From sequence record PQ464595.1: a DNA stretch of 64,000 nucleotides; one strand, 5' to 3'. Below are positions 3,743 through 61,296 of this stretch, in pieces. Made by a program: the position numbers and the translations under genes. A model generated the notes under the pieces. It was not told the DNA's origin. It was given only the letters and a program-made list of their open reading frames with translations, and did not search any database. Numbering within the stretch: the first letter of the stretch is position 1; the number at the start of each line of letters is the position of its first letter.

Positions 3743-4321
3743 TTAAAGGTAAGTTACTGACGCGTCGCGGGGATCTTCTTCAAAGTCCATATCATTTGCG
3801 ATGATAGTTTGTTTAACTTGTTCATCGCTGATAAGATCGTAATACGCTGTATCTAAATCAGAGTAGTATTCTTTACCCTGTTCAGTGATAAAGCCGTCGA
3901 TTTCTTTTTCAAGTTCTTCATACATTTCAGACTTTTTAGAAGTCATTTCGATATACCATTCACCGGACAACTCTGCGGCTGTAGTGTTGTAGTGAACATA
4001 ACGTGAACCGTGATCGCGGCTTACTTTACAGGTAATATCTTTAATGCGAATATGCTCATGTAAGCAACGGTAATGCGTCCAGCGTTTTTGTGAACGTAAA
4101 AACTTCTCAATATCCACATTGCCAGCCGTGAAACTTGCACCGTCGCCTTGTGAACAAAACCCGGAGTACTGAGATTCTACATCTTCAAAACCTACAGCTT
4201 CCAGAATAGAATGATGTTTCTCTTTAACCCAATCATTCCATTCCTGATAGTCAACGTTAATATCTCTGTTCAGTTCAATTGCTTTTTCTTGCTGTTCTGC
4301 GTTCAGTTCGTTAAATTTCAT
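3743..4321 (-). CDS. hypothetical protein (start MKFNELNAEQQEKAIE)
   Basis: Long ORF; GAG RBS before ATG at 4321. Confidence 0.8.
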   Translation of the reverse strand: MKFNELNAEQQEKAIELNRDINVDYQEWNDWVKEKHHSILEAVGFEDVESQYSGFCSQGDGASFTAGNVDIEKFLRSQKRWTHYRCLHEHIRIKDITCKVSRDHGSRYVHYNTTAAELSGEWYIEMTSKKSEMYEELEKEIDGFITEQGKEYYSDLDTAYYDLISDEQVKQTIIANDMDFEEDPRDASVTYL

Positions 4322-4473
4322 TTTGATATTCTCGCTTAAATGATTAAGGCCATTCCCTAATCCATGTAAAAGATTATACAGTACTGGATGAATAACGCAA
4401 GTACTATTCACGATTTAATTTATAAATGTTTACCTGTACAGATATACAGTACTTTTTAGTACTAAAAGCCATT

Positions 4474-4518
4474 GGACGTAACTTGCCACCCTATAGGGTT
4501 AGTCCATTTCGCTGGAGT
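4474..4518 (-). ncRNA. two-hairpin small RNA motif, copy C
   Basis: TCCA-GCGAAA-TGGA, ACCC-TATA-GGGT, GGCAAGTTACGTCC; TTGACT-17-TATACT upstream. Confidence 0.7.
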
Positions 4519-4566
4519 GAATACAGTATAGCAAAAAGGGCTAACCGAAGTCAACCCTTTATTTTC

Positions 4567-13652: not shown

Positions 13653-13761
13653 GGGTATATCCTCAATTAAAAAGTGGTTCACTGCTTCAGTACTGCCTAT
13701 TATACAGATTACTCATTTATGATCAAGTACTATCTCGTTTTAATTTACTTTATTTTAAAAC

Positions 13762-14075
13762 AAAAAATGCCCCAGGCTATGGGGCATTAATTGGTGAATA
13801 CGGTTTCCTTTCGGAAAGTCTAAGACGGCACGAATGCGATCATTAGAACTTCACACCACGCGGCTATTTAATAAGTAAGTTTGTTTAATTTATTAAGTAC
13901 CTGATAATCTTTCAGTACTAACCACAATCACCCTGTAGATGTGCTTTCGCTTTGTGGTTCCTGGTATAGACTTATTTTGTGTGCTATACGTCTTAGGGTT
14001 CTACGTACTGCCAGCAGGATATCAGCCTACTGGTTTCAATCTTAACTCCTTTGGCGTCTCGCCGTGTCGTTTCGA
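13762..14075 (-). ncRNA. candidate ~310-nt structured RNA
   Basis: TTGATC-17-TAATAT promoter, several hairpins, GCCCCA..TGGGGC-T6 terminator, no ORF of 60 aa or more on this strand. Confidence 0.5.
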
Positions 14076-14177
14076 TGTAGCTATATTATCATAACCAGCG
14101 AACCGATCAAGCGATTTAATTACTTATTTTCGATTCTTTTTCCTTGCATTCCTTATTCAGTACTGGCATAATACCTA

Positions 14178-14222
14178 CATACCGGCGAAACGGGAGACTC
14201 TAGAGAGTGGCAAGTTGCGTCT
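14178..14222 (+). ncRNA. two-hairpin small RNA motif, copy G
   Basis: TTGCAT(14144)-17-CATAAT; CCG-GCGAAA-CGG, ACTC-TAGA-GAGT, GGCAAGTTGCGTCT. Confidence 0.7.
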
Positions 14223-14243
14223 AAAATTCATTACTAATTCACT

Positions 14244-14289
14244 GGACGGATCTTCCCACCCTTGAGGGTTAGACCATTTCGCTGGATTG
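14244..14289 (-). ncRNA. two-hairpin small RNA motif, copy H
   Basis: CCA-GCGAAA-TGG, ACCC-TCAA-GGGT, GGGAAGATCCGTCC; convergent with copy G. Confidence 0.7.
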
Positions 14290-14341
14290 ATAGTACTTTA
14301 ACATAAAGGGCTAACCGAAGTCAACCCTAGATTTGTAAAGA

Positions 14342-16535: not shown

Positions 16536-16674
16536 AATATATACCTTCTTAAAAGTGATTGATTAAATTGTTTGTTTGTCTGATTCGCTCTTGCGTCTCA
16601 GTGATTACATCTTACAACATTTCGTTTCTTTCGGTCAAGGACTTTTTCAACTTTCTAGAAACTTTTTTTTCGTT

Positions 16675-16822
16675 TATCTCCAGGCGGTAGATAGGACGCT
16701 AACAGTTAGTTAGCCTTTATAACGCTGCGTTGCCTTACTGGTCATACGCGGTAAACAGTACTATCTAATCTAGCCCTGTTACCGTTTCCGTATCATGCGG
16801 CGAACCTGACCGCCTTTCGATA
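16675..16822 (-). ncRNA. candidate ~150-nt structured RNA
   Basis: Own TTGACT/TAGAAT promoter; closing helix AGGCGGT/ACCGCCT plus internal hairpins; no ORF. Confidence 0.45.
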
Positions 16823-17216
16823 ATTGACATTCTACACTACTCAATCTGACAGTCAAGTACTTTCGCAAATCTTTTTCGCGAAACCGCGTAAGTGTTTGTT
16901 TCAGTACTGAATGCCAGGTTTTTAAAGAGCGGTGTTTCGTGTCGTTGGAGCTATACTATCATAACCATCGAACCATGCAAGGACTATTTCACTATTTCTT
17001 TAAAATACTTTCGATCCTCGCTTTCCTTCCTTATATGCACTTATTGGTTCCTGTATCGCGTTCTAAGCCCTTTAACAGTACTAAGATACATAATCGCCCC
17101 GCTGTGAACCTGGTACGCTTAAACGGCTTTATATTACGTATAAGGAAGGGCTAAAAAGTTTTGTAAAGATTGTAGAAAGTCCTTGCATTATGATCTCAGT
17201 ACTGGCATAATACCTA

Positions 17217-17263
17217 CATAGACGCGAGAAAGCGGGAACCCCAGGGGGTGGGGAGTTGCGTCC
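17217..17263 (+). ncRNA. two-hairpin small RNA motif, copy I
   Basis: TTGCAT(17183)-17-CATAAT; CGC-GAGAAA-GCG, ACCCC-AG-GGGGT, GGGGAGTTGCGTCC. Confidence 0.7.
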
Positions 17264-17284
17264 AAAATTCATATAAAAAACTAC

Positions 17285-17328
17285 AGACGGATCTTGCCAC
17301 CCTCTAGGGTCGCCCATTTCGCTGGTGT
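17285..17328 (-). ncRNA. two-hairpin small RNA motif, copy J
   Basis: CCA-GCGAAA-TGG, ACCC-TAGA-GGGT, GGCAAGATCCGTCT; convergent with copy I. Confidence 0.7.
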
Positions 17329-17499
17329 GTGGATATAGTACTATAAATCGGCCAGGGATGTCAAATTTATTTTTATTAAAAAAAGTACTTGCATCCGTCG
17401 CTCAGTGTGATAATATAGCTCTGTCAACACGAAAAGACAGCTACTGATTCTGCCTGGTATTAACCAGACGCGGAAGGGGAGCTAATGGAAAAAAGCCAG

Positions 17500-17690
17500 A
17501 AAAAACCGTTTAGCCGTCTAAACGTCTAGCCACCTAGACGGATAGCCATCTAGCCTTTTAGCCGTCCAGAAGGATAGCCGTCTATACGTCTATACATCCA
17601 GCTATCTACACTTCCAGAAGTCTATCCATCTTCTGACAGCAGACGGGATAACTCCGTCTATCGAATACCTATACAGTACTATAATTGTAT
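17500..17690. repeat. cluster of short TAGCC/GTCTA iterons
   Basis: TAGCCGTCTA, AACGTCTAGCC, TAGACGGATAGCC, GGATAGCCGTCTA and similar units in a non-coding tract. Confidence 0.6.
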
Positions 17691-18602
17691 CTATAGGACT
17701 CTCTCAATTAAAATTTAACAGTACTGGCACTATACTCTCTAGGGTAATATCTACCGTACAAAAATATAATACCAGTACTGTCGAAGTGCATCAAGTGCTA
17801 CTCAAATACGCTTAGTACTCAATTTCCTAAGCAACGCAAGAAAGGAGGAAAAACTATGAACACGAGGGTTCAAGTCACCAAGCAGTCTACACCACAGGGC
17901 TAGGCTTCAGTACTGGTACGTGTTAAGCACCTCCTGAACCATGTGTGTATATTACCCTATCCCCAGCCTGGACGCAAGGACTTTTCGCAGCTATTTTCAT
18001 TATTCTTCTAGTACTGTACAAGTATCCAGTACTGTACATATACACATGGGTGCTAGAGGTTCGAACATTAGTTACAACATCTTGTTCTATATTCTTTCGG
18101 GGATAGTCTAGTACTGAAATGATTTCTAGCACTATTGAGATTTAGGCTGGAGGTTCAAAGGTACTTCAAAATTTCTAGGATCGGGATTTAGGATAGAGTA
18201 CTTTCCAGATTTTAGCTGAAGTGAGTTCTGGATTTTTCAGTACTGAGATTTTCGTTCGACTTCAGGAACAGATATAGCGGAAGGGGGTTGACAGTACTGA
18301 ACGGTGTATGCTAGGGTATTTCGCACGGTACTGTACGTATCTTCAGTACTGATAACTTATACATAATGTGTATTTTCACAGTACTGTATATTAATACATA
18401 GAATATCGCGAACGCTATTTTGGCCTGTTTGAATCCTTTCGATATCGCTCATGCGTATCTACAGGAATCAAACTAATGGATTGTAGAGCGTTCTATGAGG
18501 TTCTAGGGGGTATATTAGTACTATCTATGATGTTCTTTACTAGGTCGTTGTTTTCCTTATATGGGTAAATACGTATAAGATTTTTATATAAGGAGAGAAA
18601 GT

Positions 18603-34102: not shown

Positions 34103-34193
34103 ATCAGTTCTCTCTTAAAATTTACAGGGAGTCTTTCGTTTCAGTACAGATATAATAGCAAAAGGCTCGCCGGATGGCAAGCCCTTTTTGTGT

Positions 34194-34538
34194 TTACTGT
34201 GGAGTGATTGATTTGCGGTACTTGATCAGTGCCTGAACGATAGCAACCAGAACAAACACGATGCCTAAAATCGAACCACCAAATATAAATGTAAATCCTA
34301 ATGGTGATAATTCTTTAGAAGGTACATCAACTATTGCTTGAGCAACTAGCATAACTACGGCTACTAACCAAAAGAAAACAGAACAAAACAGAGCGTCTCC
34401 ATCAGTTGTGAAGTACTTATTAGCTAATGTTTCTTTCTTGAAATAAATCAGTATCCATCCAATTGATACATATAAAATACCAAATGAAGCAATGAATGGT
34501 GATACTAAGTTACTAAAATGTATTATGTTTTGAAGCAT
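34194..34538 (-). CDS. membrane protein
   Basis: Three hydrophobic helices. Confidence 0.7.
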   Translation of the reverse strand: MLQNIIHFSNLVSPFIASFGILYVSIGWILIYFKKETLANKYFTTDGDALFCSVFFWLVAVVMLVAQAIVDVPSKELSPLGFTFIFGGSILGIVFVLVAIVQALIKYRKSITPQ

Positions 34539-34777
34539 TACGATTCCTCCCCAAATGGAGAACGCAGGTTACGGTTACGCTCACAACGCAGTTTAATACA
34601 TGCGTGAGCAACATTTGAACTGACTTCAGTGAACAGGTATTCAGCAATTTCAGAACGAGAATAACCCTTAGCAAAAAGGGTATTGAATGTGTCCTGTACT
34701 GTTTTAGAGAAAGCCCTTGATACTTCTTCGTTAAGTAATGGACCATTCGGTAGAAGGTCTTTGTTATGGTCTTCCAT
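34538..34777 (-). CDS. hypothetical protein
   Basis: GAGG RBS. Confidence 0.65.
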   Translation of the reverse strand: MEDHNKDLLPNGPLLNEEVSRAFSKTVQDTFNTLFAKGYSRSEIAEYLFTEVSSNVAHACIKLRCERNRNLRSPFGEES

Positions 34778-37879: not shown

Positions 37880-39070
37880 TTACATGAAACCTGAACCAGT
37901 CATGCCTTCGGTGGCACGTTCGTTCATAACTTCTGCGAGTGATTGATGTTCTGCGGTACATACTTCAACATCAAGACCCAGGAACTGGCGAACGTTGAAC
38001 TGCTGTTCTTGTTCGAGTTTAAGGAACTCCAAAGTTTTGAAACAACGTCCAGGACGAATCAAAGCACTGTCAATGTCTGCCAGATTCTTGATATTCGTAC
38101 TGATGATGATCTTAACATCAGGTGATGCTAGACCTTCGGCGGCGTTCAACAGTCCAGCCATAATATCATTACCTTCTTCACGTGAATAAAGATGACGATC
38201 CACATCTTCAAAGATGAAAATATCTTTGTGTTTAGATGTGTAGATATTATTAACTAGTTCAGGAGAGTTCATAACTCCTGGAGTGTCGATAACACTTATG
38301 GTACGTTCGTCTGCGAACCCAATTCCCTGTAACATACGTTTGATGAACGTAGTTTTACCAGTGCCGGGATCTCCGTACAGTACCAAAACATTTGGTGCTG
38401 CTGCCATAAACGCACGTGCGAAATCTTCTGGTGATTCATTGAACCACGGATACATGATATTCGCTGGCATGTTGATTTTTGGTGCGTTGAACAGGATACT
38501 ATTCTCTACCATGTTTCCACGGTTATCCATACTTAGACGAGTAAGGATAGGCGTATCATTGATGTTCTCACGTTTGCTAATAGCAGTTTTGAAATCATCT
38601 GCTAAAGCAATATCCAACATGAAGGTGAACCCGAAGGTCTTATCTGTACAGTAGTTGAATTCGATACAACCATGTACTTCGTTTTCACTATAGATAAGTT
38701 CTTGGAAACCCATACTGATAGCACCCAGGTTATGTTCTTCACAGAACTTCTGGATTACTTCTTTGTAGGTTTTCTTACCTTCTTTTTCGTTCTCACTGAC
38801 GTAATAGATAGTCTCACTATGTGAATTAATGAAACGACCAGCCAGTTTATAACGAACTACGTCGCGGAAACGCAGGTTATTTGAATACTCAAGAGATGCG
38901 TGAACAATGTCTTGTACTTGTTCACGTACAGATTGTGATAGATTAGTCATATCAGGTAATTCGATCCTCGGAACGGGGTTTAAATCAATTGCGGTGCGTT
39001 GATGCTGAGGGGTTTCAAGTTTAACCGTGATTCCCCTGTCAGCAAGATAGTTTCGTAGAAGGTTACTCAT
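37880..39070 (-). CDS. AAA+ family ATPase
   Basis: GDPGTGKT, FEDVD, ISTN, IDSALIRPGR second region of homology. Confidence 0.9.
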   Translation of the reverse strand: MSNLLRNYLADRGITVKLETPQHQRTAIDLNPVPRIELPDMTNLSQSVREQVQDIVHASLEYSNNLRFRDVVRYKLAGRFINSHSETIYYVSENEKEGKKTYKEVIQKFCEEHNLGAISMGFQELIYSENEVHGCIEFNYCTDKTFGFTFMLDIALADDFKTAISKRENINDTPILTRLSMDNRGNMVENSILFNAPKINMPANIMYPWFNESPEDFARAFMAAAPNVLVLYGDPGTGKTTFIKRMLQGIGFADERTISVIDTPGVMNSPELVNNIYTSKHKDIFIFEDVDRHLYSREEGNDIMAGLLNAAEGLASPDVKIIISTNIKNLADIDSALIRPGRCFKTLEFLKLEQEQQFNVRQFLGLDVEVCTAEHQSLAEVMNERATEGMTGSGFM

Positions 39071-44282: not shown

Positions 44283-44389
44283 TATTGTTGTACCTCTTTC
44301 CTATTAATGAACCAGTTAAATTTCGTTGATGGGATCGTACTTTACTCGCCTCGCTCTTGCGAGTCAAGGATTTTCTTTCGCTTCGCAGC

Positions 44390-44920
44390 AAGAAAATCTA
44401 AATTAAAATCTAATTTACCTCATTTACATCTGACGAGATTTGTTGAGGCATTTTCATCCCCCCGCTGGGGGCTTGAAACCTGACGATGATAGTCGTCGGC
44501 ATTATTGTATTGAGAATTACTTTTGGAGAAGTGCAGAAGCGGGTTGTTCGGTATTCTTCTTATCTCAGTTCTAACAACGGTCGAGGTCTTAGCTCGCATA
44601 ATACTAAATCTATACAATCAAATCTAGTACTTGAAAACAGCAAAATTTGGACGTGACTATATTGTACAAATTCCGGTGCTTTCTCCCTTATCGGTTATTG
44701 GTAAGGTAGCATCCTTATATGTCTATCGAGGAAGTACGTGACGATTGTAGTACTTCTTTATAGAGCCGCATTGCCGTGGACGGTACAAACTATGCCGATT
44801 CCTAACGGGTTTCTTTTGCTCTTTGAACTGCCTGAACTTCTCAACTATCCAATTACATTGTCATCGGAAATAGGGTTACAATATTAGGGACAAATTGCCC
44901 CTATCAAACAGAATTGTATT
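44390..44920 (-). ncRNA. candidate ~530-nt structured RNA
   Basis: Extended -10 TGCTATAAT, many hairpins, no RBS-supported ORF. Confidence 0.45.
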
Positions 44921-44972
44921 GGTACATTATAGCACAGAAAATCGTGCCGTTTCATGTTTCTGTTAAATTTTT

Positions 44973-48967: not shown

Positions 48968-49044
48968 GTATATATTTTGTACGACAATTTATTTCCAATA
49001 AAAAAGGCCATCATATGATGGCCTTTCATCTTTCTTAATAGTTA

Positions 49045-49194
49045 TTATGCTTCGCGAGTAGTACGAATGATAATATCATTCCCCTTCTCACGCTTCGCAG
49101 CGGTACGTGCTTCTTCCGGTGAACGAGCACCCTGACGAGTACTGAGCGGAACAGAACTACCTTTCTGGAAGTACTCAACGATGTATTCTTTCAT
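49045..49194 (-). CDS. small hypothetical protein
   Basis: AGGGG RBS before MKEYIVEY. Confidence 0.55.
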   Translation of the reverse strand: MKEYIVEYFQKGSSVPLSTRQGARSPEEARTAAKREKGNDIIIRTTREA

Positions 49195-49198
49195 AGTA

Positions 49199-49420
49199 TT
49201 ACCCCTTTGGAGATACGTTGATTTCGACATTGAAGCCCAGGGCTTCTACACAGTTCAGCAGTTCATCGACGGTGAACATGTACAGACGTTCATCCAGAAG
49301 ATTTGAAACACGTGCTTGATGGAGGTCGAACTTACGTGCTAGGTCACGTTGACCAAGACCCTGCTCAGCAGCAGTGACTTTGATAAGATTGACCAGACGA
49401 ATTTTGATTTGATTGCTCAT
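49199..49420 (-). CDS. XRE-family helix-turn-helix protein
   Basis: LGQRDLARKFDLHQARVSNLL...FTVDELL..VEALG. Confidence 0.85.
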   Translation of the reverse strand: MSNQIKIRLVNLIKVTAAEQGLGQRDLARKFDLHQARVSNLLDERLYMFTVDELLNCVEALGFNVEINVSPKG

Positions 49421-49444
49421 GATAACACCTTACTTAAAGAAGTT

Positions 49445-49560
49445 CAATTAAAAGTTGCCGGATTTCTCCGGCGGTTCGGTTACGACGTTTATCGTCTCAC
49501 CTTCCGAAACACCTTTACCGCACTAGGGCTGACCATCTCACAGGTAGTGGGGAATCTATG
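49445..49560 (-). ncRNA. structured leader or small RNA
   Basis: TTGACA-17-TATACT promoter; hairpins GACG-ATAAA-CGTC and GCCGGA-GAAA-TCCGGC. Confidence 0.4.
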
Positions 49561-49599
49561 CTTTACAGTATAGTCGGCTGTTCCCTGGTTGTCAAGGCC

Positions 49600-50545
49600 A
49601 GATGTGACTTATGGAACACATCGCAGAGACAACTCATTTTTGAAGAACGCTATGTGCTAGTCCTCTCCGAACAGATTATAGCACACAACTTCGTAGTACT
49701 TCAATCCTGGATTGGTCTTTGTTCGGAAAGACCGGACATACATCGCTAATCAAGCACTCTCGAAAGAGGTCAGTACCTACGCTGTACTGATAATGTATGC
49801 TGAAACACTCACGGCATGGTCTATCACCGTACCCCATCAGACGATTAAGGAAAGCCCACTGTTGGCTTCATCTAACTATGATCAGTTAGTCGTGTTTCTA
49901 CTCATATACTATGCGACTGGTAAATCCCTTCCGACCATCATTAAAAATGTGAATCGGACAAGACGTACACTACCCGCAATGCTCACTACATTTTCGCAAT
50001 TCCCCGCACCAATGCGGCGGGGTATTGTATATTCGAGTTCAGGTATCGACGCTATAAACAGTCATCCTCTTTATACCGGAGATATTATCCCATTCTCGAA
50101 GTTGTTTGCCATTCATATTGAATGGCGAAGTCAGACATGAACAGGTTTCACAGAATCTCTATCGGGCAAAGCCCAACTTCATCTCCACCTTGGATCTCAT
50201 AGTATCCTAAGTTCATTCGCAATTTGTCAGTTCTTTCTACATTATGAGCCATACGTATTTGCTTAACGTACCTCTGTCAGACAAGAACTCGCATCATTTA
50301 TAAGTAAGTTTGGTTGAAACGTTAATTACTTCATGACGGCGATCTCCTATAGTTCCGATTCGCGGGGCTACGCTGCTCCCGCTAGGGTTCTACACGGCAG
50401 TCTACACGCTGTAGTACTGCTACTTTTGCTCATTTAGAGCCGCAAATTCAAGAGTTTTCTAAGATCAGTTTTGGTTTAGATTATCTGTTACATCTGCGTT
50501 CAATCCTCTTTGTCAGTTATCGTCGTTTTCACGTTCACTTCAGAG
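49600..50545 (-). ncRNA. candidate large (~950 nt) ornate ncRNA
   Basis: No minus-strand ORF of 60 aa or more, at least 11 hairpins, three tandem consensus promoters upstream. Confidence 0.6.
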
Positions 50546-50550
50546 TCTTC

Positions 50551-50783
50551 ATCATACTATCTAGCGAATCGGCTGTCAAGTACTTTTTCTATTTCTTTCA
50601 ACTTTTCACCCTTAAGTACTTTTAAGTACCAGACAGTGCGAGTTAGCTTCCTGTCTTGAGGTGTCCAGTATATCACACCAGGTTAGGGTGTCAATGACTT
50701 TTTTACATCTTTTTCACCATCAGGTATTTTGGTGAACTTCCTTCTTAGCAATTCCAGTATATCAAGTCCAGATGGTTTGTCAA
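50551..50783 (-). promoter_or_regulatory. three tandem sigma70 promoters
   Basis: TTGACA at 50778-83, 50689-94 and 50574-79 with -10 TATACT, TATACT and TATGAT (spacers 16, 16, 17; first two with TGn extension). Confidence 0.75.
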
Positions 50784-50787
50784 GGAC

Positions 50788-50871
50788 TTAATTGAAAAGA
50801 TGCATCTCAGGTGAGACAACTAACAAGATGATAATCAATATCATCAGTACTAATTCTTCACCCCAGGACAT
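50788..50871 (-). CDS. 27-aa hydrophobic micropeptide
   Basis: MSWGEELVLMILIIILLVVSPEMHLFN with weak RBS. Confidence 0.4.
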   Translation of the reverse strand: MSWGEELVLMILIIILLVVSPEMHLFN

Positions 50872-50924
50872 AATGCTTCTCACTTAATAGGAGGGGATAC
50901 TTCCCCTCGATGTAGAACATCTTA

Positions 50925-51191
50925 TCACTTCACCGCTTTCGCGTCAAGCACCCATTTGCCTTTTGAGTTCTGTACGTAGTGGCAAGTACTCTTTACAATT
51001 TCCTGTAACTCGACAACTTCATGGACATGGTGAGTACTAACCAGCATGAACTTCCTGGCGTACTCTACAGCGGCTTCAGCCGTTTCGAATAGCTTCGCAT
51101 CACTTTGTACATTTGTTCGTACTGGAGTCTCCCAGCGGTCTTCACGGATGTACTTATATTCACTTTCAGTCTGAACACGAATGAAGAACAT
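50925..51191 (-). CDS. hypothetical protein
   Basis: GGAGGT RBS before MFFIRV. Confidence 0.65.
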   Translation of the reverse strand: MFFIRVQTESEYKYIREDRWETPVRTNVQSDAKLFETAEAAVEYARKFMLVSTHHVHEVVELQEIVKSTCHYVQNSKGKWVLDAKAVK

Positions 51192-59837: not shown

Positions 59838-59910
59838 TGGAGCTATGCGGATTTGAACCGCAGACCTACTACGTGCAAGGCAGTTGCTCTACCAACTGAG
59901 CTATAGCCCC
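59838..59910 (-). tRNA. tRNA-Ala(TGC)
   Basis: Cloverleaf GGGGCTA/TAGCTCC, anticodon loop CT-TGC-AC. Confidence 0.95.
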
Positions 59911-59991
59911 TTATCACGTCCTTACTTATACCGAGTCGGCTTTCGGGCAGACGTGATACACCCCGAAGCACATTGGCTTTGTATAAGTTTG

Positions 59992-60064
59992 ATGCGGGAG
60001 AGGGATTTGAACCCCCGACCTCCAGGTTATGAGCCTGGCAAGCTGACCGCTGCTCTACCCCGCA
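59992..60064 (-). tRNA. tRNA-Met(CAT), initiator-like
   Basis: TGCGGGG..AGCAG, anticodon arm CCAGG-CTCATAA-CCTGG. Confidence 0.9.
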
Positions 60065-60201
60065 TTTCCTATGTGATTATTATACCACATTTTTTTGAGC
60101 CGTTCCAATTTTTTTCAACATTTTTCAATTTCAGAATCAAGCGGCTATCTCTCAATTCATGCTAACATTATACCAGAATTTTTCTAGTCGTTCCAACTTT
60201 T

Positions 60202-60396
60202 TTACAACGCTAAGAAAAAACTTAACGCGGGTAAACCAATGAACAGTACGATTAAACCTAACCAAAATAACGTGTAGTATTTCAGTTTGAATTTTTTAGT
60301 ACCGTATTGCGGGGCAGCAATGCCAAAGTTAATGAAGAACAACAACCCTACTACCCAACAGATTACGCTGAACAGTACTGCTACAGTGATGTACAT
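60202..60396 (-). CDS. small membrane protein
   Basis: GGAG RBS before MYITVAV; two TMs. Confidence 0.6.
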   Translation of the reverse strand: MYITVAVLFSVICWVVGLLFFINFGIAAPQYGTKKFKLKYYTLFWLGLIVLFIGLPALSFFLAL

Positions 60397-60416
60397 TGTA
60401 CCATCTCCATCATTAG

Positions 60417-60489
60417 TGGTCAATACTGGATTCGAACCAGTGACAGCGACATTATGAGTATCGTGCTCTACCAACTGAGCTAATTGACC
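60417..60489 (-). tRNA. tRNA with CAT anticodon (elongator Met or Ile2)
   Basis: GGTCAAT/ATTGACC acceptor, CGATA-CTCATAA-TGTCG. Confidence 0.9.
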
Positions 60490-60683
60490 CTTGGATAATT
60501 TTGTACGTTGTGAGCTAGTGCTTTGATCTCACAACGTGCTTTGTTGATATTACTAACAGCACGATTTTGGTACTCATTAGTAACTGGTTGTACTGAGCTA
60601 TCAACAATTATATACTGCTGTAGCTCATGTTGTAAAGCCATTAATTCACTCTCAATCTGTACTAACCGTTCAGTACTGAGCAT
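60480..60683 (-). CDS. hypothetical coiled-coil protein
   Basis: GAGG RBS before MLSTERL. Confidence 0.6.
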   Translation of the reverse strand: MLSTERLVQIESELMALQHELQQYIIVDSSVQPVTNEYQNRAVSNINKARCEIKALAHNVQNYPRVN

Positions 60684-60757
60684 GATTTTATCCTCTCGCT
60701 TAAAACGTGTAAGCATTATTACACGTTGCCTCGCACTCGTCAAGGACTTTTTTAAGA

Positions 60758-60834
60758 TGGTGGGCTTTCAGGGATTCGAACCCTGGACCGTCACTTTAAG
60801 AGAGTGCTACTCTAACCTACTGAGTTAAAAGCCC
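60758..60834 (-). tRNA. tRNA-Lys(CTT)
   Basis: GGGCTTT/AAAGCCC-A-CCA, loop CT-CTT-AA. Confidence 0.93.
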
Positions 60835-61187
60835 ATATCCTTAACTGCTCTCGTTAAAATGTAATTGAAGCGACAGCAATCATAAAACGTTAGACCGAAC
60901 CTTTCTTCCTTCACTATATCACGATATTCTACGATGCTTAGTTTATCTTTTCCTGAATCATCTAAGTTCAGTAGTAGACCAAAATCAACAACGCATACTA
61001 GAATGTGAAGATCACCTTCATCATCATAATATCCAAGTCGTAGTAATGGTACTGGTGCATCTTCTGCGAAGTACATAACGTATGTAGTGCCGTTATAATC
61101 AATAGTACCATCTTCATAACGTAAGAAATGATGATAGTTAGTATCGAAGAACTTCGCTATATCCTTTAGTGAGTTAAGTTCGTTCAT
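60825..61187 (-). CDS. hypothetical protein
   Basis: AAGGA RBS before MNELNSL. Confidence 0.65.
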   Translation of the reverse strand: MNELNSLKDIAKFFDTNYHHFLRYEDGTIDYNGTTYVMYFAEDAPVPLLRLGYYDDEGDLHILVCVVDFGLLLNLDDSGKDKLSIVEYRDIVKEERFGLTFYDCCRFNYILTRAVKDMGF

Positions 61188-61219
61188 ATATATTTCCTTA
61201 TATATACAGTTCATTTTAG

Positions 61220-61296
61220 AGCGTGGAGAGGGATTTGAACCCCCGATTTTACGGATTTGCAATCCGTTCCAATTGACCAGACTCTGGCATCCACGC
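61220..61296 (-). tRNA. tRNA-Cys(GCA)
   Basis: GCGTGGA/TCCACGC-T, ACGGA-TTGCAAA-TCCGT. Confidence 0.93.

Follow-up and report, generated by a model that had tools for sequence, protein, structure and literature searches.

A candidate new family of large structured RNA in the early-gene region of Erwinia phage Kaldavass and related jumbo phages

The 64,000-nt stretch of record PQ464595.1 considered here (the window) comes from Erwinia phage Kaldavass, a jumbo phage of 366.6 kb, and window coordinates are identical to those of the record. On its minus strand, upstream of a helix-turn-helix (HTH) gene and a sigma-factor gene, lies an element, termed element A, that is almost certainly a structured functional RNA, and the evidence supports its assignment to a family of large, structured phage RNAs not described before. 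The fold is conserved and strand-specific, and the promoter and terminator sequences are conserved, as judged by comparison among related phages. From these sequences we infer the actual transcription of element A, its timing and abundance, its action in trans and its molecular partner. The reading favoured here, with a probability of roughly 0.6, is a stand-alone, abundantly expressed early non-coding RNA (ncRNA) of a new family, which would act as a folded RNA while read-through feeds the downstream genes.

A non-coding locus with a conserved, strand-specific fold

Element A occupies a gap of 1504 nt (49421–50924) between a conserved gene at 50925–51191 (minus strand) and the HTH gene at 49199–49420 (minus strand). 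The original prediction had described a minus-strand tract of about 1.3 kb without an open reading frame (ORF) of 60 aa or more, and this description holds: the longest minus-strand ORF within the gap is 53 aa, and neither strand of 49421–50924 holds a conserved ORF. The corresponding gap is present in Xanthomonas phage XbC2, Cronobacter phage GAP32 and Pectobacterium phage CBB (Mimasvirus), in Serratia phage BF, the Erwinia pEa_SNUABM phages and Yersinia phage fHe-Yen9-04 (Eneladusvirus), as well as in several IMG/VR and metagenome contigs; four metagenomic lineages carry it. Its position, upstream of the small-protein and sigma-factor genes, is fixed whether or not an HTH gene is present. 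The relatives resemble each other in collinear blocks between variable stretches. Between Kaldavass and GAP32, identity reaches 77% in the RNA core and 76% in the sigma-factor gene, with 45–60% in the surrounding protein genes; the RNA core appears to be under purifying selection.

In the PQ464595 annotation the gap holds seven tiny "hypothetical proteins", of which six lie on the opposite strand, and the plus-strand CDS0114–0119 span 49409–50659 across the RNA locus. In the corresponding gap, the annotators of XbC2 and CBB called zero genes. The 142-aa plus-strand ORF at 49712–50140, which the original prediction had named as a possible refutation, exists in the sequence and carries no coding signature. 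Its mismatches are spread evenly over the three codon positions (16/11/14 against XbC2, 34/38/31 against GAP32 and 41/42/39 against one metagenomic relative), the indels in its region measure 1, 2, 4, 5 and 11 nt, not multiples of three, and the homologous frame contains 2–7 stops in most relatives, with five in GAP32. In tblastx comparisons with the relatives, all six frames are equally similar and the frame switches between blocks; a Pfam search of the ORFs of the gap gave zero matches. Because the tblastx, codon-position and Pfam tests give no coding signal, CDS0114–0119 are very probably spurious calls. The RNA locus is non-coding, and replacement of the tiny "hypothetical proteins" in GenBank by an ncRNA feature is warranted.

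The predicted RNA and its parts are arranged as follows, all on the minus strand:
49450–50544: predicted RNA body, from the start at promoter P3 to the terminator U-tract, ~1095 nt
50485–50508: 5′ block, GAGGAUUGAACGCAGAUGUAACAG (GAGGAUUGAACGCAgAUGUAACAG), nearly invariant, with a Shine–Dalgarno (SD)-like GAGG and an AUG-UAA start-stop
50232–50484: variable 5′ expansion, with hairpins at 50397–50420 and 50362–50381 and a conserved AUG-AAG-UAA mini-frame
50103–50231: mid domain, part of the universal core, with hairpin GCCAUUC/GAAUGGC at 50108–50126
49901–50102: lineage-specific expansion, with hairpin CCCCGC/GCGGGG at 50002–50022
49644–49900: 3′ domain, with two multi-branch junctions and two terminal hairpins
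49721–49726: hairpin loop CCGAAC, proposed kissing partner of GUUCGG
49667–49672: hairpin loop GUUCGG, proposed kissing partner of CCGAAC
49473–49643: tail module M2, structured, containing the promoter-like site P4
49450–49472: terminator-like hairpin GCCGGA-GAAA-UCCGGC, followed by AAC and UUUU

Comparative folding across related phages, proposed earlier as a check on this locus, gives strong strand-specific covariation. In the core alignment of 13 sequences, the RNAalifold consensus shows compensatory double changes in 39 of 83 pairs. The 3′ domain was aligned separately (window 49644–49900), and controls were made by sliding the pairing partners by 1–3 columns and by 500 shuffles. Its model comprises 78 pairs in 13 helices; 93.7% of the alignment cells are paired, 39 of the 78 pairs carry double changes and the covariation score is 0.389, compared with 36–47% pairing, 7–16 double-change pairs and scores of 0.06–0.11 in the slid controls, and none of the 500 shuffles reaches the observed values. 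The mid domain behaves similarly, with 94.6% of cells pairing against 29–50% when slid, and double changes in 8 of 25 pairs; in the tail between the 3′ domain and the terminator, 9 of 36 predicted pairs show double changes. G-U pairs outnumber A-C combinations in the 3′ domain cells (95 against 18), and the minus strand of 49640–50544 folds at −271.3 kcal/mol (z −4.7), compared with −236.5 kcal/mol (z −2.4) for its complement. The structure is assigned to the minus strand on account of both the G-U excess and the better minus-strand fold and z-score.

The 3′-domain model (R1) has a single match in the window, at 257 bits, and a mid-domain covariance model from nine sequences (R2) finds three left-out members with E values of 3e-11, 3e-10 and 0.015. 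All nine hairpins named in the original prediction are in the sequence; seven of them show compensatory changes, and the two at 50397–50420 and 50362–50381 are confined to the Kaldavass/GAP32 lineage and vary little. Furthermore, the loops CCGAAC and GUUCGG can form six base pairs in all 13 sequences, and in fHe-Yen9-04 they change together to CCAAAC and GUUUGG. As this is a single compensatory event, the loop–loop (kissing) contact is suggestive only. A second possible contact, between a loop CGUAG and CUACG at 49696–49692, is compatible with all sequences. One pairing was rejected: that of the 5′ block with the 3′ strand of the mid domain, seen in the single-sequence minimum-free-energy fold, is by eye not preserved in CBB and contig 3300042923.

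The RNA is modular, combining a 5′ block, a mid domain and a 3′ domain with lineage-specific expansions and an optional tail module. The 5′ block takes the form GAGGATTGAACGCA-A/G-ATGTAACAG in 11 of 12 sequences, diverges in contig 3300042923 and is unique in the window. The variable 5′ expansion is partly missing in CBB and BF and absent in fHe-Yen9-04 and contig 3300042923; in GAP32 the base of the hairpin at 50397–50420 carries one compensatory change (GCAGU/ACUGC to ACAGU/ACUGU). The expansion at 49901–50102 belongs to the Kaldavass and GAP32 lineages and is reduced or absent in CBB, BF and fHe-Yen9-04, and its CCCCGC/GCGGGG stem covaries among the lineages that carry it. The tail module M2 occurs in the Kaldavass, CBB and BF lineages and not in GAP32, fHe-Yen9-04 or contig 3300042923. 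In one IMG/VR variant, 3300031417 (IMGVR_UViG_3300031417_000002, ~3883–4530), the whole 3′ domain is lost, with the promoter, 5′ block, mid domain and terminator kept.

Promoters, boundaries and flanking genes

Promoter-like sites were scored by their matches to the sigma-70 consensus TTGACA/TATAAT, out of 12. Five sites lie in and just upstream of the RNA; they are listed here with the gene that follows the unit, all on the minus strand:
50756–50783: P1, TTGACA-16-TATACT with a TG extension, 11/12, −35 at 50783–50778
50667–50694: P2, TTGACA-16-TATACT with a TG extension and an A-rich upstream tract, 11/12, −35 at 50694–50689
50551–50579: P3, TTGACA-17-TATGAT with an A-rich upstream tract, 11/12, −35 at 50579–50574
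49675–49704: P-int, internal promoter-like element TTGAAG-18-TGcTATAAT with an extended −10, 10/12 with TG
49595–49590 (−35) and 49572–49567 (−10): P4, promoter-like TTGACA-17-TATACT inside the tail module M2
49199–49420: HTH_37 gene (Pfam HTH_37, E 3e-16), directly downstream of the RNA unit

Sites scoring at least 11/12 number 18 in the window, four of them within this 1.2 kb, compared with 3.7 ± 1.6 for simulated sequence. The three TTGACA promoters reported earlier at 50778, 50689 and 50574 are all present, each at 11/12. The further claim that three tandem promoters drive the RNA stands in part: three near-consensus sites precede it in Kaldavass, and within the family conservation is limited to P2 and P3. 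A 97-nt insertion, found only in Kaldavass and missing from XbC2, the metagenomic relatives, GAP32, CBB and BF, contains P1. P2, approximately 115 nt upstream of P3, aligns in Kaldavass, XbC2, two IMG/VR contigs, GAP32, CBB and BF. P3 is found in every family member, its cTTGACA...TAnAAT kept in all 12 full-length sequences, and its predicted start lies near 50544. According to the CBB study (PMC5259590), the early region in which this locus lies is where RpoD-like promoters with UP-like elements are concentrated.

Of the two sites within the RNA, P-int lies inside a covarying terminal hairpin and is found in all members; in 13 sequences its TTG, TG and TAt.AT do not vary, and its spacer covaries with 49654–49661. 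P4 occurs in Mimasvirus and overlaps covarying helices; in BF, the hairpins at the P4 hexamers covary and persist while the promoter consensus is lost. P-int and P4 may be internal promoters, RNA motifs or both.

The conserved P3 and the conserved terminator mark the ends of the element, giving a unit of ~1095 nt. The length estimated previously, ~950 nt, therefore becomes ~1.1 kb, and the end once placed at 49600 moves to ~49450. Transcripts from P2 and P1 would measure ~1210 and ~1300 nt, respectively, and the predicted RNA of the relatives is 0.7–1.1 kb long (~700 nt in the smallest). Every family member has a GC-rich hairpin at this end, with stem sequences unrelated to each other, followed by (A/C)CUUUUAA, 35–40 nt before the next start codon. 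As this leaves no room for a promoter of its own after the terminator, the HTH gene would be reached by read-through or from P-int/P4.

The position that had been assigned to the element, directly upstream of an XRE-type HTH gene and a sigma-factor gene, is borne out, with the HTH_37 gene and then the sigma-factor gene downstream. The next gene varies: it is the HTH gene in Kaldavass, GAP32 and CBB and a homologue of a 49-aa protein in BF, and in contig 3300042256 and pEa_SNUABM_50 an inserted gene of 138–155 aa follows the RNA. These extra genes (L009, 4060–4476; L004, 4011–4478) start with MNNLRYIRWG and MFTNFRYIRWD and adjoin the RNA terminator, ahead of the HTH or small-protein gene. The basic 49-aa protein (49045–49194, minus strand; L017, 4134–4280) is conserved and always encoded just upstream of the sigma-factor gene; it corresponds to PHROG 36312, labelled "unknown function" in PHROGs, and a probable homologue (33% identity) occupies the same position upstream of sigma in phage Hallingskeid. 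A perfect palindromic hairpin, AAAGGCCATCATATGATGGCCTTT, with T-runs at 49003–49026 forms a strong terminator between the HTH and small-protein genes on one side and the sigma-factor gene on the other. A DksA-like protein gene lies 4 kb from the RNA locus. On the other side, an ORF for a hydrophobic peptide within 50788–50883 (minus strand), MSWGEELVLMILIIILLVVSPEMH... from the ATG at 50871, has its own SD-like sequence and is preceded by a hairpin. Kaldavass, XbC2 and one IMG/VR contig share this small ORF, which lies just upstream of P1 and may be a genuine gene for a small membrane protein.

Comparison with known RNAs and alternative explanations

A search of the whole window with Rfam 15 at the gathering threshold returned only five tRNAs, none of them in the locus, and with permissive filters (E ≤ 10) the region 49300–51000 gave only chance-level snoRNA/sroH matches of 14–17 bits, compared with gathering thresholds of 37–101. 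GOLLD, ROOL, OLE, group I and II introns, RNase P, tmRNA, 6S and the known riboswitches and ribozymes all lack an Rfam 15 match here, so element A belongs to none of GOLLD, ROOL, OLE, the introns, RNase P, tmRNA or 6S. The original prediction had offered a GOLLD/ROOL-type RNA or a new one and had called for an Rfam comparison with these families plus introns, tmRNA and RNase P; the branch of a new RNA is supported, and the GOLLD/ROOL branch falls with the empty search. Adjacency to tRNA genes, also suggested, does not apply, since the nearest lie at 59838–61296, 9 kb away, and the relatives have zero tRNA genes annotated in the locus. The literature searched contains no description of an RNA at this locus, a negative that does not extend to the 10,006 unnamed candidates of PMC10690425, which possibly include fragments of it.

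Element A nevertheless resembles GOLLD and ROOL in size class (0.6–1.1 kb), phage origin, many covarying helices, conserved loops and a modular core with expansions, and its predicted loop–loop contact could in principle be intermolecular. GOLLD and ROOL come from Firmicutes, rumen or lake sequences, whereas element A is found in jumbo phages of Enterobacterales, has no model match and no tRNA adjacency, and stands behind tandem consensus sigma-70 promoters in an early-gene region. Cryo-electron microscopy of ROOL and GOLLD revealed RNA-only multimeric cages (bioRxiv 10.1101/2024.12.08.627333). With OLE and raiA, element A shares a large, highly conserved structure derived from comparative analysis and a probable abundance; it differs in being phage-borne, without an Rfam match and absent from a pattern scan of 185,579 bacterial and archaeal species (GTDB, one genome per species). 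OLE and raiA are chromosomal in Gram-positive bacteria.

In expression architecture, the nearest likeness is to the rRNA operons of E. coli, where tandem P1–P2 promoters with UP elements drive stable RNA: element A too has two strong promoters ~115 nt apart, with A-rich tracts, ahead of a structured ncRNA. There is no relation in sequence, and the analogy concerns architecture alone. A 6S-like role is a lead, by analogy, in that the neighbourhood (sigma factor, HTH, DksA-like protein) would fit a link to the sigma-70 holoenzyme and element A contains −35/−10-like sequences; unlike 6S, it has no 6S model match, is about six times larger, and no long helix with a central bubble was identified in it. 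T-box, riboswitch and phage put/nut leaders likewise stand upstream of co-oriented genes with a hairpin and U-tract before the start codon. Element A is several-fold larger, its downstream gene varies and it has no Rfam cis-regulatory match.

Several roles were considered and set aside. A CsrB/RsmB-type sponge is not indicated, as GGA has z-scores of −1.0 to +0.6 in all 13 members; a ribosome sponge is not indicated either, with SD-like motifs at chance level. An antisense regulator of a nearby phage gene finds no basis, the invariant 5′ block having no complement in the window. An obligate RNA–protein pair with the 49-aa protein is contradicted by the probable homologue of that protein in Hallingskeid, where R1 and R2 find no RNA within ±20 kb of the sigma-factor gene.

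The family comprises approximately ten lineages, in Mimasvirus, Eneladusvirus and two related uncultured lineages, within reach of the searches made. Around the sigma-factor genes, R1 and R2 gave no match in the more distant phages Munch (±4.5 kb), 121Q (±4.5 kb) or Hallingskeid (±20 kb). Pattern scans of IMG/VR and JGI metagenomes returned only close relatives or added nothing, and blastn with the most divergent member brought no new phage genera.

Element A might also be read as a giant structured 5′ leader acting in cis, in which the fold and the hairpin with UUUU form an attenuator for the HTH and 49-aa protein genes. The 35–40 nt between terminator and start codon are too few for a promoter, the short U-tract makes read-through likely, and the unit is always co-oriented and just upstream of the small-protein/sigma cluster, all of which speaks for such a leader. 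It is nonetheless unlikely. Association with one downstream gene family fails, since the HTH gene, the 138–155-aa gene or the 49-aa protein follows depending on the phage, and the pair of 49-aa protein and sigma factor exists in Hallingskeid without the RNA; both observations favour an independent gene. Bacterial cis-regulatory RNAs are generally a few hundred nt at most, far below a conserved multi-domain structure of 0.7–1.1 kb, and two or three of the strongest promoters of the region would be odd equipment for a small regulator gene. Very unlikely is a chiefly DNA-level element, whether five co-directional promoters or a transcription-primed replication origin with an R-loop. Five promoter-like sites in 1.3 kb and the agreement of the invariant positions of the internal elements with sigma-70 contact positions speak for it, and precedents exist: ColE1 RNA II and the T4 and T7 origins are transcription-primed, the ColE1 primer RNA is structured, and tandem promoters precede the T7 primary origin. 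Yet the locus shows no GC-skew switch or strand switch, and an AT-rich unwinding tract was not noticed. Moreover, at least 13 helices covary, with G-U pairs abundant on one strand only, which exceeds the needs of a promoter array and points to selection on a folded RNA.

A mobile or catalytic RNA that has degenerated or escaped recognition, for instance the remnant of an intron or a free-standing ribozyme, would also be in keeping with the complex multi-domain fold, its conserved loops and loop–loop contact, and with the homing endonuclease genes found nearby in relatives (GAP32_491). This origin is highly improbable, as no Rfam intron or ribozyme matches at E ≤ 10, no gene is interrupted, the position is fixed across genera and the unit has its own promoters and terminator. 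Hardly credible is a protein-coding function, exerted through the 142-aa plus-strand ORF, CDS0114–0119 or micro-peptides such as AUG-AAG-UAA. ORFs do exist and are annotated as hypothetical proteins in PQ464595, antisense ORFs of 74–185 aa recur in relatives and two motifs of SD plus mini-frame are conserved. Against these stand the even substitutions over codon positions, the non-triplet indels, the in-frame stops in relatives, the equality of all tblastx frames, the empty Pfam search and the lack of any called gene in XbC2 and CBB.

Some observations weigh against a stand-alone, folded early ncRNA and temper the confidence placed in it. P-int and P4 lie inside the RNA and their invariant positions are exactly those important for sigma-70, so that selection on the DNA itself may account for some of the conservation. 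The promoters and the terminator are known as consensus matches alone. The terminator has just four U, three nt from the stem, and so short a U-tract could permit much read-through, in which case the RNA could be chiefly a 5′ leader. Clues to a binding partner are absent: GGA and SD-like motifs are not enriched, and the window holds no antisense target. The family is small, so that the lineage-specific helices rest on few events among about ten independent lineages, and the loss of the 3′ domain in one lineage means that this domain is not essential.

Proposed mode of action, a second element and wider meaning

Taken with its conserved ends, element A probably forms its own transcription unit; an action in trans is also favoured, with less assurance. 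In the stand-alone reading, the host sigma-70 RNA polymerase would read the minus strand from P2 and P3 (plus the extra P1 in Kaldavass) at the start of infection and at a high rate. The RNA would then fold into its universal core (5′ block and mid domain), the 3′ domain and the lineage-specific expansions, the 3′ domain being stabilised by the probable six-base-pair loop–loop contact. Transcription would end at the terminator with the short U-tract, just before the next gene, while the mRNA for the HTH and 49-aa protein genes downstream would come from leaky read-through or from the internal promoter-like elements. The RNA would accumulate early and act in trans in the form of a folded particle; it could serve as scaffold or decoy for a protein of the host or the phage, and this role may be tied to the neighbouring genes for transcription take-over. 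As sigma-factor, HTH and DksA-like genes lie nearby, a link with transcription take-over is the most attractive guess.

A second ORF-poor gap at 44283–44972 (minus strand) holds another structured RNA candidate of ~600 nt, element B. This candidate is more widespread than element A: it is conserved across 62 phage records, those of Escherichia, Salmonella and Klebsiella jumbo phages among them, and each genome has 3–5 matching places. Gaps near sigma that had lacked an explanation in 121Q, Munch, Hallingskeid and fHe-Yen9-04 are filled by its homologues. In a ten-lineage alignment, 141 pairs are predicted, 61 of them with compensatory changes, and 93.6% of cells are paired. Rfam contains no match to element B, and covariance-model searches show it to be unrelated to element A. 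Immediately before its start stands a TGAAACG...TATAAT motif, a type of phage-specific promoter that has been reported for CBB and GAP32 (PMC5259590).

Further ORF-poor stretches of the window, at 13653–14341 and 16536–18602, are also filled with tiny annotated ORFs. The 5′ part of the former (~230 nt) is conserved in Eneladusvirus and Yersinia phages, and its 3′ part is a ~100-nt repeat recurring at ~1257, 4470, 10608, 12413 and 17180; the latter is a 2-kb region where gene orientation switches. In Hallingskeid (PQ464590), 34131–34742 and 38042–38609 show runs of tiny opposite-strand ORF calls like those at the Kaldavass RNA loci, and the first of them overlaps an element B homologue.

That elements A and B are two unrelated large RNAs flanking the take-over genes for the sigma factor, the HTH regulator and the DksA-like protein, a new RNA machinery for host take-over, is a speculative and rather improbable extension. 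Under it, element A would be made by the host sigma-70 polymerase at the start of infection, and element B, conserved throughout this group of jumbo phages, starts after the phage-specific TGAAACG-type promoter. Element A could act as a decoy for the sigma-70 holoenzyme by mimicking promoter elements; alternatively, it could assemble through the CCGAAC/GUUCGG loops into an RNA-only particle, in the manner of ROOL and GOLLD.

New classes of large bacterial or phage RNAs with intricate folds are rare, and to our knowledge none of OLE, GOLLD, ROOL and raiA has a settled mechanism. Element A is carried by cultivated lytic jumbo phages of Erwinia, Cronobacter, Pectobacterium, Serratia and Yersinia, easily grown Enterobacterales, and with cultivable phages and E. 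coli-type promoters the RNA can be expressed, deleted, probed and imaged directly. Its position beside a sigma factor, with a second RNA kilobases away, suggests a role of RNA in jumbo-phage take-over that protein-centred annotation has missed.

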